Shown here piece by piece: positions 1,432-61,859 of a DNA stretch of 64,000 nucleotides. The notes beneath the pieces were generated by a model. It did no database searches, was not told the DNA's origin, and saw only the letters and a list, made by a program, of their open reading frames with translations. Position 1 is the stretch's first letter, and each line of letters opens with the position of its first letter. Source of the stretch: Utricularia gibba. Its lineage: Eukaryota > Plantae > Magnoliophyta. Position numbers and translations under genes: made by a program. The DNA lies in contig CM007989.1 of the NCBI GenBank assembly GCA_002189035.1, positions 2,418,001-2,482,000 on the forward strand, read 5' to 3'.

Positions 1432-3456
1432 TTATGGTAGCTGAATCAAACTGTTTGCAGGAGCTTTTACAAGTCCAATGCCATCCATCAGGAGCCTGAC
1501 TTTCTCTGCATCATCAAACCTTCCAACTGCAGAATAAATATTTCCCAGAAGCACATAGTTTCCTGTATTTGTTGGTTCCAACTTAAACAGCTTCCTGGCT
1601 GCCAATTCGCCAAGCTCGAGGTTTTCATGTACCACACAGGAGCCAAGCAGTGCACCCCAAACAGCAGGGCAAGAATCATAAGGCATGTTCTTGATCACCG
1701 TGTATGCCTCATCGAGCCGATTAGCGCGTCCAAGGAGATCAACGATGCAGGTATAGTGTTCACTTTGTAGACATTTTTTATGATTCTTCTGCATGAAGTT
1801 AAACAAGTCAAATCCCTCGTCCACTAGACCTGCATGCCCACAAGCATGCAGTACGGAAGTAAGGGTTACTTCATTTGGTTTAACTCCGGACTGAACCATC
1901 TCCTTGAAAAGAGACATAGCAACCTCGCCATGGCCATGCTTCCCATAACCAGCGATTATCACACTCCATGATACAATGTCTCTGTACCTCCCTGAGAGTG
2001 TATCAAACAGCTTGTGAGCATACGGCATATTTCCACTTTTTGAATATATATCCATCAAACCAGTAATGATATCAGGTTTCCTGATAAATCCTGATCTGAT
2101 CACATAACAATGGATATTCATAGCATGATGCAGATCTGCCATAATGGCATATGCAGGAAGTAGGCTTTTCCAAGTTGCGTCGTTGAGTTTCACTCCCATA
2201 AGAAGCATTTGCTTGAACAATTCTACTGCTTCTGTGACCAAATTATTTACCAGGCACCCCGAAAGAACTGCATTCCAGGGCACTGTCCTCTTCCGGCAAG
2301 TCTTTGAGAACAACCTAAAGCTTAAATGAACAGAGTTGCATTTGGCGTAGAGGTCAATTAAAGAGGTTTCAACGTTAACATCACACTCGATGAAATGGCG
2401 AATAGCCCAGCTGTGCAAGCATTTCCCAAGCCTCAAATTGTATGAATTACCACACACTGTTAAAAGCAAAGCCAGCGTAATCTCATTAGGCTTCACGCCC
2501 TTGGAAATCATCAATCTGCACAGTTCAAACGCACCTCCAGCATCTGCACTTAAAACATAGCCATTAATCATGGAAGTCCAGGAGACCACATCCTTCTCCA
2601 TCATACCATCAAAAACACAACGAGCTTTGTCCATTCTTCCACATTTCAAATACATATCGATTAAAGCGTTTTCAACAGCGAGGCTTCTTACAGCAATGTT
2701 CTCCTCAACTATTTTCTGTACTTCATTACCTGATTTCAAGTCCTTCAAATACCCACAAGCAGGTAAAATGGAGAGAACTGTCGCCGAGTCAATCCCCACC
2801 CCACTTCCCACCATTCTCCTAAATATCCTCAAAGCATCTGCAGCGCTCCCATTCCTGAAGTTTCCACTAATCATTGTATTCCATGAGACAACGGTTTTCT
2901 CCTCCATACCAGAAAAAACTGCTTCAGCACCTCGTCTGTCGCCACAATTCATGTACATTGCAAGCAACGAGTTCCCTAAAAAACAATTCATTCCAACCCC
3001 ACTCCTAACAATTAGTCCATGAACCATCATTCCTAAATCAAGTAAACCCAACTCTCCACATGCTCGAACAACAAACGGATATGTGTAGTGATCTGCCACA
3101 CAGGAACCCGACTCATGCATTTCCTCAAACAGTTCCAGCGCCATCCTAGGGAACCCATTTGAGGCATACATTTGTATCATCCCATTATACGCCACTACCG
3201 TTCGTTTAGGCAATTCATCGAACACCCTGCAAGCGTCCAGAACTTGGCCGCACAGAGCGTAAGCAGACGTCAATAAAGACAGGAAATGATTCGAGAGAAG
3301 TTCGGAGGTAATGCAACGCGCGTGAAGCTTCTTGGTCGTCCCAAGGGACTTGGTCGTGGTGGCGCAACGAAACAGCAGCGACTCGCACTGCGAAGCGGCA
3401 GTTGAGAAGAGGTGATTCAGCGCGCGAGACAACGGTAACGGCGAACATTGGCCCAT
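1432..3456 (-). CDS. PLS-class pentatricopeptide repeat protein, E subclass (At5g39350-like), intronless
   Basis: 674-aa ORF with repeated PLS motifs (VVSWNTMISG, DVVSWTSMINGY, HYTCIVDLLGRA) and an E domain (VWGALLGSCVVHENLELGELAARKLFKLEP...NYVLLGNIY); no DYW tail. Confidence 0.95.
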   Translation of the reverse strand: MGQCSPLPLSRALNHLFSTAASQCESLLFRCATTTKSLGTTKKLHARCITSELLSNHFLSLLTSAYALCGQVLDACRVFDELPKRTVVAYNGMIQMYASNGFPRMALELFEEMHESGSCVADHYTYPFVVRACGELGLLDLGMMVHGLIVRSGVGMNCFLGNSLLAMYMNCGDRRGAEAVFSGMEEKTVVSWNTMISGNFRNGSAADALRIFRRMVGSGVGIDSATVLSILPACGYLKDLKSGNEVQKIVEENIAVRSLAVENALIDMYLKCGRMDKARCVFDGMMEKDVVSWTSMINGYVLSADAGGAFELCRLMISKGVKPNEITLALLLTVCGNSYNLRLGKCLHSWAIRHFIECDVNVETSLIDLYAKCNSVHLSFRLFSKTCRKRTVPWNAVLSGCLVNNLVTEAVELFKQMLLMGVKLNDATWKSLLPAYAIMADLHHAMNIHCYVIRSGFIRKPDIITGLMDIYSKSGNMPYAHKLFDTLSGRYRDIVSWSVIIAGYGKHGHGEVAMSLFKEMVQSGVKPNEVTLTSVLHACGHAGLVDEGFDLFNFMQKNHKKCLQSEHYTCIVDLLGRANRLDEAYTVIKNMPYDSCPAVWGALLGSCVVHENLELGELAARKLFKLEPTNTGNYVLLGNIYSAVGRFDDAEKVRLLMDGIGLVKAPANSLIQLP

Positions 3457-3587
3457 TCATCCCTCACCGGAACTCTTTGCCAAAGCCTCGACTCTCGCCA
3501 GAGGCACCGGCGACAACCTTCAACAGACCGGGGCCGCCGGAGCGTGAAGCCCATACACATTCCATTAGCCGTTTTGTTATTTTAAAA

Positions 3588-3666
3588 GTGGCCCCAGGCC
3601 CATATGTCTCTTTATCTGGGCCCATAACATTATGGGCGTCCGTACGTTTCCGCTACATGGCCCAGG
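3588..3666. promoter_or_regulatory. Cluster of site II-like (TGGGCC/GGCCCA) elements upstream of the PPR gene
   Basis: Several GGCCCA/TGGGCC hexamers within about 80 bp, 130-210 bp upstream of the PPR ATG. Confidence 0.5.
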
Positions 3667-4231
3667 ATCATTTATCCCATTTCTTATGATAAATAGAAAG
3701 TATTTACACATTGACCCCATTAGTTTAATAAAATTAAAATTCATTCATTTTCTTTATGAATTTTTCCCATGTCCCACAGTACACAAATTTAGTTGTGTTT
3801 ATGCATGACGTGATTGGAACCCCTGACCTAATTAATTAAAATAATGACAAATTAAATATTCTACTTTCTAATTTAGCAATAGATTTTCCTTATTTAACCT
3901 ATGACAGCGTATTTAAAACAGCGTTGACTTTTGAACATGCAGCTAGAACTAGAATGTGATTACGTAAGGGATACCATTTCCTTTCAAAATTAATACCAAT
4001 TTAATTTTAATGAATACCCACTTGATACTATTGAATTTTTTTCCACCAATAATCCGTAAAAATGCATTTTTTACAAAAAAAAAATACCAATTACATGTTC
4101 CGAAGAAATTCTATTAATGATTGGGACGTCGTATTAATCCATCCGACAAATGGATCAAGTTTAGGATATTGTCCAAACCGAACTCAACTCATAATCTATC
4201 TAGTTTTGAATTCGATTTAATTCATTATTAA

Positions 4232-4519
4232 GGGCATGTTATGTTTTTATAATTTTTTGAATTTGTTCTGTTTAATTTTTGAAAATTTTAATTTTTAAAC
4301 GCTCTATAATAAAACCATCAATTTAGATTCTGTAATTAATTTTAAAAATTATTGAACTTATTTAATCTATGTTTCAATGATTAAATAAAAGATTATTAAT
4401 AAAATTTATATTATTTTTTATCTATTATAAAAATATATTTATATTAAACTTAACAATATTTATTTTATAATCTTAAAATTGATTTTATTGTGCACATCTT
4501 CAAATTACATAACATGTCC
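4232..4519. mobile_element. Tourist/PIF-Harbinger-like MITE (about 288 bp)
   Basis: TIRs GGGCATGTTATG (4232-4243) and CATAACATGTCC (4508-4519), 11/12 reverse-complement match; TAA flanks at 4229-4231 and 4520-4522; very AT-rich non-coding interior. Confidence 0.75.
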
Positions 4520-5081
4520 TAAATCAAATCTAAAAATTTATGAATTCAAGTTGAATCGAATCTAACAAACACTTAGGATAGAGTTTGTTTATGATGATAA
4601 GATGCTTGTTTTTATTTTAATGTGCTTTATTGGGGAGTATTATTAAGGAAAAAGAAAACAAAAACTGTATTAGATATAGTTTTGGGGTAAAAATGATATC
4701 TTGATTTTGGTAATGTTGGAAGAGTTAATTGACCTATGCAGCTCGGCAAGGAGGGAAAATAAAGCAATTAAATGAAGAAATCTCAAGGTTCCATTGAGTG
4801 ATTCAGAATGCTGAATAGCAGTAAATGGCGCTGCTACTAGGAGCTTCAGAAAGTCAACAACGGAGGTCTGTAGATTGCTGTGGAACTGTGTTGCCAGTGG
4901 GGATCAGCAAGCTTCGTTTTCGATCAAGTTTAAGAGACCGAAGTTTTGAATGATTTCTTTTCACCACACGGTTCTTTTTATGATGCAATTGCGATTGACG
5001 TCAAAAGTATCGACTTGCTTTTTGATGGGACCTTCTTTTGGATTTCAAAGCTGCAATCTTTGATCCTTATCTGCGAAGAGT

Positions 5082-7301
<2,220 letters not shown>

Positions 7302-53127: not shown

Positions 53128-54829
53128 TCAACACTCCCCTTCAATTTCCTTTTCCACCTCCAGTTGCAGTTCGGAAATCTCGTCCATCTCCAATTCCACC
53201 TTGGGTTGCTGCAGTTTAGTGTCCTCCTCTTTTTCCAATTCCAATGGCAAAATGTCTGGTAGTGGTTGCTGCAAAATTGGCCGTTGACTAAGAGCGTCTT
53301 GTCCAAGCATGGACGACACACGGACCTCATTTAAAGCCTTCTCTGCATCCTCGCGAAGACTCTTGAGGGTGCTTAGGGTTCTATGTTTGAGTTCTGCTGC
53401 AAGATTAAGATCACCTCCTAGCTCTGCCTTCGTGATCTCCAGAGTTACCCTGTCAATCTGTCAACATTTTCATTATGTCGGACCCATGGGGTGGCTACTT
53501 AAGACAAGATTCTGAGGGTGCCTCATCTTGTATAGTTGATAACCTGGACATGATGTATTTTCCCTCCTCACTCAATTCGTCAAACCACTTCTTCAATGAA
53601 GACAGCTCTCTTTCAATGTCAGGATCGTTGTTCTGATCATATCCAAGAATTTTATCAACCTGCTTAATCCTCGAAGCAATCTCCATATTCAACCTTTCAG
53701 CCGCTGCAACAATGTCAATAGCTGCATCGAAGAAGAAAGAAGAGCAATTGCCAGTAGCTTTTACTTCTTTCTAATCCAAGAATTGTTGAATGACAAGGCA
53801 TGAACTTCCTACCCTCCTGGAAAGCGTCGGTTTCAGTTCCCATCATAATCCGCAATAGTTTGAGCAGCTTCTTTCCTCGAACAAGCCCATGAATCACCAA
53901 AGGCATTAGTAAATCTACGGTGTATGTATAATCTGTCCCAATTCCCCATATGAGCTCCAATATCATAGTTAGCAAACAATTGAGGAAAAACTTACGTCTG
54001 GGAGCACCGACCCTTGAGATTGCAGTCTCAACTGCAAGCCGTAGGCGTTCAAAGGACAGATAGACAGATTGGAAGAGCTCCTTTTCGATGTGATGATTAT
54101 GAGTATAAGCAAAGAGAAGATGCCAGGATGTGGTTGATGAGCTACCATACTTATCTCGGTACATTCTTGCATGGTGTATCAAAGATTCCAAGTGAGTTCC
54201 CAAGTGGGGATCATGCAAATCATGAAGAATCTGCAAAGGTTGATACACAGTAACTTGGATCATTAATGTGATCGAACCTCATGTATCATCATGGATACTC
54301 AATTCCGAGAATGCAAAGACAATCCAAGAAAACCGAAGGGCATAAATGAAACCTGAAGATATCAGTATATACAAATTACACGAGCAACTTAGAAAAAAAA
54401 AATTGAATGAACCTTTGGATTCCTCTGAATGTATATCTCAGTAGCATCGAGAACCAAGTCAGGATATACCCAAGCCTCCATAAATACGTGACGAGCTCGT
54501 CCATCCTCTTGCATTAGAAGAGCTTTCAACAAATGCTCAGGCTCAACTGCAATATTCTTGTTCACTCGTGCTACTTCACGCGATAACAGGATTGCTTGCC
54601 ATGCCTCTTCGCTGAAATCCTGCTCCCTTAACTGGATGACGCATGCACCAAAACACTTCGTGTTACAAAAATCAGAGAACCAGACAGTATGACAAATTGA
54701 GGTATCACTTACGCTGCTCCAACTCCAAGATGCATCACAACGGATAGCGAAGGATCGGTTAACCACGCGGTTGCGCGATTTTGTAGCAAACCTTGATGAA
54801 TCGTTTCTCCCGCGAGATCCACAGGACAT
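53128..54829 (-). CDS. ClpB3-derived protein lacking both AAA+ domains (transit peptide, Clp N-domain, M-domain coiled coil, acidic tail; about 366 aa)
   Basis: Exons 54829-54713, 54631-54413, 54230-53996, 53721-53522 and 53457-53128 join in frame (1101 nt); motifs QDFSEEAWQAI, EPEHLLKALL, IDIVAAAERLNMEIAS, IDRVTLEITKAE..DLNLAAELK; the last intron needs a GC donor. Confidence 0.65.
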
Positions 54830-55540
54830 TTTCGGAGTCGCTAAAATCTGAAGGCTGATCGGTGACTGAGAAGAAGCCGGAATCGGCGGCTCTAATTGGA
54901 GAAAGCATAGTGAAGGTTAAGGAGAGCGCCATTGGAGTGACGAAGGAGATGCCGTCTGTGAAAGATAAAACCTGCCGCCATACACGAGGTGTCAAGAATA
55001 AGTGTTGCTTTCAAACGCAAGTCTTGCGTTCCATGCGTTTGGAAACTGTTTCACACATTAGAAAATAGTTTGACTCTCTCTCCTCTATCAACCAACTTGG
55101 TCTCGGCGGCCGTACTACATTCCGTACTTTAATTTTTGGAACTTATAAAAAATTATATTAAATAATATACATTATATTTAATTTTCCGATAACACTATAA
55201 ATTAATCTTCAAATAAATTTTCTTATTATATTATTTTTTGAAATATTTCATAAAAAAATTAATTCTAAAATATAAATAAGATTTTAAAATAAAAATATTA
55301 TTCTTTATATTCCTATAAATATAATTATGATGTAGAATGGGCCACGTACTCATCCATCATTTCAGGTACCGGGTTCGGTGCCCTAGAGTTGAATTAGATC
55401 AGAATAAATGCCCAATATCGAGGTGAAGGCACAGGGTCCAGGCCTTGCTCTTCATTCTTCCCAACAACACAACTTCAAAGGGAATGATCTCATCGTCTCT
55501 AAAAGGAAAGAAAAGCGCCCCCATGAGGAAGTCAGCGTAT

Positions 55541-60869: not shown

Positions 60870-61859
60870 TCACTTCCAGAGCTCCTCCATCGGAATCCCA
60901 CGCTCCTCCGCGACTTGCTCGAATTGCCTCATTTTCTGCACCGCAATAACCGTCGCCCTCGCGTTGTTCAGAGCATTGTTGCTACCGAGCTGCTTCCCCA
61001 GAGCATTCTCCACTCCGGCCATTTCCAGAACTATTCGTACAGCCCCTCCGGCAATCACTCCGGTACCGGGGGCAGCTGGTCGGAGCATCACCTTCGCGGC
61101 GCCGTAGTCCGCCTCCGATCTGCTCCAGGCCAGTGCAAAATGAATACTGTATCCTACGGTATAAAACTTATAATGGCGCTTCTAATTCGCTTATATTAAT
61201 GGTACTCACCGATGAGGAAAGGTCTTGTATTTGGTCATCGGCACGGAGATGATGTTTCTGCGGGCATTGACGGCCGATTTTTGCACGGCGGAGACGACTT
61301 CTTTCGCTTTACCAACACCAACTCCGACATTCCCCTGCCTATCGCCAACGACCACAATTGCCCTAAAATGAAGCTGTTTCCCTCCTTTGACAACCTTGGT
61401 AACCCTCCTCACCTGAACGACTCTCTCATCAAAACCATCCTTCACCTTCTCCTTCTTCGCCGTTCCCAAACCAGAAGATTTCTTAATCTTCGAATTCATC
61501 ACATACACGTCGTTTCCCAGGAAACTCTCGCCACTATATGCAGGACCGTACAGTTCCTCATACGCCAGAGCGATTTCATCCTCCGTTTCCACCGGGCCAT
61601 CATCGATCGACGGAGTCCGTACATATATTTCCGGCGATTCTTCGGAATCTACGCCCTCGACTTGGTCTGGGGCATCGATCCCAGAGCCAGATCTCGGCGG
61701 AGGCAATTTCTGAGGTCGCGCGGTGTGTACGACCAGGGGAAACTTTGATGCCGTAATGGAAATACCGCAAGGCGAGAATAAAGGTGAACTCCGGCGGCGA
61801 TTGTCGACTGAGAGAGCCGATAGGGCGGCCGTGAGGAAACCAGCGGCGGTGGCAGCCAT
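60870..61859 (-). CDS. PRPS5: Plastid 30S ribosomal protein S5, 2 exons
   Basis: [29 protein letters not shown] ... [38 protein letters not shown]; N-terminal transit peptide. Confidence 0.95.

Follow-up and report, generated by a model that had tools for sequence, protein, structure and literature searches.

A ClpB-derived locus without ATPase modules in Utricularia gibba that may still encode a non-catalytic protein

A minus-strand locus at 54829-53128 of the window, by which we mean the whole 64-kb stretch of Utricularia gibba DNA that was analysed, contains collinear pieces of a ClpB gene, and both AAA+ modules of ClpB are absent at the level of the DNA and not just of a transcript. With a probability of about 0.45, the locus is a rearranged paralogue of an organellar, cyanobacterial-type ClpB gene (of the ClpB3/ClpB4 kind) that would still encode a live, non-catalytic protein. 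A still-encoded protein is taken as the most likely reading because the frame appears to have been kept open by selection.

ClpB homology and the missing ATPase modules

A profile HMM of 872 positions was built from 62 full-length cyanobacterial ClpB proteins, the clpB loci of which had been found by a degenerate-pattern search for the peptide DLVDEAAAKLKMEIT, and was searched against all 3,502 stop-to-stop segments of the window on both strands (E ≤ 1). Four of the 3,502 segments were matched, all within the locus and all collinear with the profile. These correspond to four of the five exon-like blocks described below, namely E2 (profile positions 7-78, N-domain repeat 1, E = 3.5e-12), E3 (82-144, N-domain repeat 2, E = 6e-5), E4 (386-440, the start of the M-domain, a weak match at E = 0.006) and E5 (480-528, M-domain motif 2, E = 1.5e-5). 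The derivation of the locus from ClpB is real and far beyond chance.

The initial annotation had described a Clp N-domain joined to an M-domain without AAA modules; the profile and Pfam searches agree with this as far as Clp_N in E2, pieces of the M-domain (by the HMM) and the absence of AAA are concerned. Exon by exon, the Clp_N family (PF02861) was found by Pfam in E2 only (36.9 bits, E = 4e-9, above the gathering threshold of 20.7), the second repeat in E3 scoring below threshold. E2 was also matched by positions 1-68 of the NCBIfam ClpB equivalog TIGR03346 with 23.5 bits; the cut-off of that model, 1232 bits, is set for whole proteins and was not reached by our exons, which were scored singly, and the exons other than E2 gave no match to it. 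Among the PDB sequences, E2 aligns end to end with the N-domain of the apicoplast ClpB (4xbi, residues 5-75, E = 3e-4), and E3 weakly with the second N-repeat of 4iod (E = 0.37). Thus, the two diverged N-domain repeats assigned initially to two exons were both recovered, repeat 1 by Pfam and by our HMM and repeat 2 by our HMM only.

E4 and E5 have no match in Pfam, in NCBIfam, in a phmmer search of the PDB or against E. coli ClpB, and they were matched by the cyanobacterial HMM alone, so that the M-domain assignment rests on that profile. It should be noted that E. coli ClpB is too distant as a comparator, as only E2 aligned with it better than shuffled sequences (z = 5). The M-domain that had been proposed to follow the N-domain is present in its start and its motif 2, but it is incomplete: the match fades after the first helix, and about 24 residues at profile positions ~441-465 are absent. 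Furthermore, these M-domain pieces have no NBD1 to sit in.

No HMM match to NBD1 (profile 145-385) or to NBD2 together with the C-terminal part (529-872) was found in any frame of the 64 kb at E ≤ 1, none of the exons matched an AAA family in Pfam, and no Walker A or Walker B pattern was detected in any frame of the locus, which confirms the absence of these motifs observed initially. The 64-kb window contains no N and no assembly gap. A ClpB is defined by two AAA+ modules bearing Walker A and Walker B motifs, and these are therefore lacking. A product of the locus cannot be a disaggregase, because the NBDs are indispensable for binding ATP, for assembling the hexamer and for threading.

Candidate gene model, splice sites and starts

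Five exon-like blocks with a total length of 1101 nt (E1 to E5) were placed at 54829-53128 on the minus strand, to which all features of this section belong. Reading the locus and placing its splice sites reproduced the coordinates and phases of the original model, and the anatomy as described here is very probably correct. E1 (54829-54713) has 39 codons, and its translation includes ten Ser, seven Arg and two Asp but no Glu. The block has no family match in Pfam, and the composition of this putative leader is transit-peptide-like; the ...RCDAS-like motif at its end is one that we take to be shared with plastid ClpB3. Intron 1 (54632-54712; 81 nt, GTAAGT...CAG) is stop-free and in frame, and is followed by E2 (54631-54413) with the 73 codons of N-domain repeat 1 and by intron 2 (54231-54412; 182 nt, GT-AG, 43% T). 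E3 (54230-53996; 78 codons and 1 nt) carries the strongly diverged N-domain repeat 2 and ends at the phase-1 donor GAC|GTAAGT. Intron 3 (53722-53995; 274 nt, GT-AG) occupies the place of NBD1.

E4 (53721-53522) opens with 2 nt that complete the codon begun by the last nucleotide of E3, so that the phase-1 join of the two blocks is in frame, as initially claimed, with a split codon for Pro. The 66 codons that follow comprise the M-domain start (IDIVAAAERLNMEIAS...) and a diverged middle, and it is here that the ~24 residues are absent. Intron 4 (53458-53521; 64 nt) is of the GC-AG type, with the donor GAG|GCACCC, 47% GC and 23% T, whereas introns 1-3 have good GT-AG sites, and introns 1 and 2 contain 38-43% T. 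The last block, E5 (53457-53128), has 109 codons and a TGA: the first 48 codons (53314-53457) hold M-domain motif 2, which is the best-kept part of this domain, and the tail (53128-53313) consists of 61 acidic, Gln/Leu-rich codons and the TGA. The tail, considered novel from the outset, had no detectable relative in the cluster-representative and word-index searches. An imperfect 45-nt tandem duplication with 71% identical copies was observed within it (53165-53243), suggesting that part of the tail was born by local duplication.

The intact frame of 1101 nt emphasized in the initial annotation holds in that the blocks sum to this length, but it depends on the poor, T-poor GC-AG intron 4 of 64 nt. 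If this intron were retained, the frame would stop at a TAG (53500-53498) and the product would be made without E5. A canonical, in-frame GT-AG alternative exists, however, which leads from the donor CAG|GTTATC (53543) to the AG before 53449 (94 nt) at the cost of ten residues. A further peculiarity concerns the 5' border of E4. The alignment of this block with ClpB begins about eight codons 5' of the acceptor (SFFFDAAIDIV vs. RFLPDKAIDLV), and therefore the AG at 53723-53722 probably lies inside former coding sequence. The E4 acceptor is thus probably a new site within old coding sequence rather than an old exon border, which speaks against the clean exon loss proposed initially; the evidence is moderate, as a pyrimidine tract easily translates into residues of this kind.

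Intron 3 is stop-free in the E3 frame over all 93 codons, and only 30 out of 20,000 shuffled sequences were equally open. The optional symmetric phase-1 exon suggested in the initial annotation was located within it as a candidate cassette of 102 nt (53813-53914, phase-1/phase-1, AG/GT-flanked), with a coding-like score of 0.18 bits/codon; were it included, two shorter introns of 81 nt and 91 nt would take the place of intron 3. On visual inspection, the cassette is reminiscent of ClpB NBD1 near NLLKPMLARGELR, but this resemblance is not significant. We also considered intron 3 as a compacted relic of NBD1 with Walker-A-like and sensor-like islands visible by eye, and set this aside as unproven, as both local and chained alignments failed against shuffled sequences.

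Five ATGs were found within 300 nt upstream of the model ATG. One of them, at 54932, opens an upstream ORF of 57 codons (54762-54932; MALS...) that is in another frame and overlaps the model ATG. It sits ~67 codons before the ...RCDAS motif, which is about as long as a complete transit peptide should be, and may be the ancestral start, now out of frame. Inside the same ORF there is a phase-0 donor (AAG|GTTTGC) that could splice in frame to the phase-0 acceptor of E2, thus providing an alternative leader.

Divergence of the copy and constraint on its reading frame

Divergence was measured at the 80 aligned positions where the 62 cyanobacterial ClpBs agree to 90% or more. The locus retains 44 of these near-invariant residues and has replaced the other 36 (45%), so that the copy is not young, at variance with the young duplicate considered in the initial annotation. 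Retention differs among the exons (E2 12/18, E5 12/15, E3 7/17, E4 13/30) and is highest in repeat 1 and motif 2, with p = 0.05 in a chi-square test and p = 0.012 for a split into two groups that was chosen post hoc; repeat 2 and motif 1 of the M-domain have suffered heavy erosion.

No stop or frameshift was found within ~330 codons, and each of the four homologous segments falls within an open frame, 91-187 codons long. Disruptions of homologous segments, as used to recognize a pseudogene, are therefore absent from the locus. We simulated neutral change by mutating the exon codons at random, with no indels, until amino-acid identity had fallen to ~0.54. The 265 homologous codons remained stop-free in 0.2% of the runs (p ~0.002, indels ignored) and all 365 codons in less than 0.1%. 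The earlier argument that an open frame combined with high divergence favours selection thus survives simulation, and neutral decay since the duplication is rejected.

The frame was also preserved by three rearrangements, namely the E3/E4 junction, the ~24-codon gap in E4 and the 61-codon tail. The codon usage of the five exons in their proposed frames scores 0.11-0.31 bits/codon, compared with 0.17-0.22 for real genes of the window, and exceeds that of the other frames, of the non-coding flanks and of intron 2. Taken together, the simulation, the frame-preserving rearrangements, the codon usage and the uneven retention indicate that selection kept the frame coding for most of the history of the copy; the test concerns that history and is silent on present selection.

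Relatives, rival readings and a possible role

The locus resembles organellar ClpB (ClpB3/APG6 and ClpB4 of plants, and cyanobacterial ClpB) in its N-domain repeats, M-domain start and motif 2, which are homologous and collinear, and differs from it by the loss of both AAA+ modules and ~24 residues of the M-domain, by a new tail and by replacements at 45% of the near-invariant positions. Another comparison is offered by ClpT1 and ClpT2. The ClpT proteins derive from the N-domain of ClpC, lack an M-domain, bind the ClpPR core and show conservation throughout the plants. A product of the locus, if expressed, would likewise be ATPase-less, based on a Clp N-domain and probably located in the plastid. 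However, unlike ClpT, the locus is ClpB-derived, with the N-domain of ClpB 4xbi as its best full-length match and only partial and weaker PDB matches to ClpC N-domains; it contains motif 2 of the M-domain, and the searches gave no orthologue for it. The M-domain pieces argue against membership in the ClpT family.

Truncated plant HSP100-like loci are already known, for example rice Os08g15230, which has only a truncated ClpN (PMC2829514), and Arabidopsis ClpB2, which lacks ClpB_D2 (PMC11595012). Like these two, the Utricularia locus is a partial Clp/Hsp100 paralogue missing defining domains, and such paralogues are usually set aside in family surveys (PMC2829514, PMC11595012). What is unusual here is the combination of N-domain and motif 2 in a frame evidently maintained by selection: unlike those truncated loci, N-domain and M-domain pieces stand in one open, spliceable frame, and its maintenance is statistically supported. 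A shortened form of ClpB is also made naturally in E. coli, where ClpB80, annotated in the E. coli record, arises from an internal start and modulates the full-length protein. It represents the opposite truncation, keeping both ATPase modules and the M-domain and losing the N-domain.

Among 1.84 billion cluster representatives, E5 matched only a spurious repeat protein of 3,022 residues, and word-index searches with E5 and with a 146-codon ORF gave no match. Neither this ORF nor the Dof ORF next to the locus has an exact counterpart in the protein collection. As negatives the cluster-representative and word-index searches are weak, because the M-domain part scores too low for a database of that size and a length filter hides proteins of ~366 residues. 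The first exon of plastid rpS5 in the same window (61209-61859, minus strand) is 63-69% identical to its best Lamiales orthologues, with no identical protein on record, suggesting that the protein collection contains neither this species nor any close relative and weakening every no-relative result. Within 10 kb of rpS5, no ClpB-like relic was found in Sesamum or Erythranthe, where the gene order differs anyway. In Erythranthe nasuta, an annotated AAA_2 gene of 838 residues lies 4 kb from plastid rpS5 (positions 2158-5740 of that locus). It is 31-43% similar to the NBD2 region of ClpB, thus only distantly ClpB-like, has no match to the exons described here and may be SMXL-type.

On one side of the locus, a RETICULATA-like gene (PF11891; 50000-52837, minus strand) starts ~300 bp below the stop, so that the 3' end of the ClpB-derived locus and the RETICULATA-like promoter overlap or are very short. 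On the other side, a WRC-domain gene ends ~1.3 kb above the locus start, followed by plastid rpS5 and a Dof gene. The locus is bracketed by neither inverted nor direct repeats. Capture by a transposon was considered and rejected, as terminal inverted repeats are lacking and no direct repeats occur at the flanks.

A dead or dying ClpB duplicate, deleted piecemeal in a compact genome, is a serious alternative, to which we assign somewhat less than an even chance. Such a copy would have been coding for a long time, either in the short form or as a divergent full-length gene, and would have been disabled too recently for stops to accumulate. Its lesions could be intron 4, with its GC donor and unusual composition, the upstream ATG that is out of frame and the acceptor within old coding sequence, and the same reading would account for the erosion of repeat 2 and motif 1, the loss of both catalytic modules and the lack of an orthologue or annotated relative in the cluster and word-index searches and at two Lamiales rpS5 loci. 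Truncated HSP100-like loci set aside as non-members provide a precedent for it. Several of these features were equally weighed against a live protein, including intron 4 with its weak donor, all five upstream ATGs, the position of the E4 acceptor, the eroded segments, the tail without relatives, the lack of a copy near rpS5 and the ATG of the next gene just 300 bp below the stop. Nevertheless, no single lesion is decisive, and the canonical in-frame splice offers a way to E5. The frame that stayed open in spite of the divergence, at p ~0.002 under neutrality, implies that any death of the locus must be very recent, and decay does not readily explain three independent rearrangements that all kept the frame or a codon usage that is gene-like.

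Two further explanations appear considerably less probable. The locus might be a non-coding by-product, either serving mainly as promoter or 5' sequence for the RETICULATA-like gene or giving a uORF-laden transcript from which the model protein is not made. The very short gap between the stop at 53128 and the ATG of the next gene at ~52830, as well as the several upstream ATGs, would fit this, whereas short spacers are general in the window, and the long open frames, the coding-like codon usage and the frame-preserving rearrangements would be left unexplained; we consider it rather improbable. An assembly artefact, in which the NBD exons of a true full-length ClpB3 had been collapsed out, was named beforehand as an outcome that would overturn the original interpretation, and it is very improbable. 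The window is free of N, the missing parts are not flanked by direct repeats, ~24 further codons are absent inside E4, and with 45% of the near-invariant positions changed and repeat 2 below the Pfam threshold, the retained parts are too diverged for an essential ClpB3.

If the locus does encode a live protein, the product would have ~265-400 residues, according to the splicing of introns 3 and 4. It would retain a short leader, a two-repeat N-domain with a good repeat 1 and a degenerate repeat 2, the first helix of the M-domain, motif 2 and an acidic tail. A protein of this composition could act only by binding, putatively to unfolded clients through the N-domain and to the organellar Hsp70 through motif 2, and could compete with full-length ClpB or bridge to it. 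The tip of motif 2 of ClpB contacts the ATPase domain of DnaK/Hsp70, and motif 1 of one subunit meets motif 2 of its neighbour in a head-to-tail contact (PMC4023160). In the locus, motif 2 is near-complete, with the 12 of 15 near-invariant residues counted for E5, and the position equivalent to E. coli Tyr503 is occupied by His. For a protein that is made and imported, the simplest role would be binding, in competition or as a bridge, with organellar Hsp70, clients or the M-domains of full-length ClpB as partners. A more specific version of this role, the adaptor or decoy proposed initially, is unlikely: a plastid-directed, ATPase-less ClpB derivative, under selection for its substrate-binding N-domain and its Hsp70-docking motif 2, might serve as a stoichiometric brake or bridge on cpHsp70-ClpB3 disaggregation, a counterpart of ClpT born by the deletion of both motors.

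Should the locus be dead, it would provide a snapshot of a compact plant genome dismantling a duplicated gene through in-frame deletions. Should the protein be made, it would represent a natural experiment on those ClpB parts that work by binding rather than by ATP-driven threading. With the motor removed from the N-domain and from the half of the M-domain that binds Hsp70, it would offer a handle on the tuning of the plastid Hsp70-ClpB system and an example of a regulator created by the deletion of catalytic modules.
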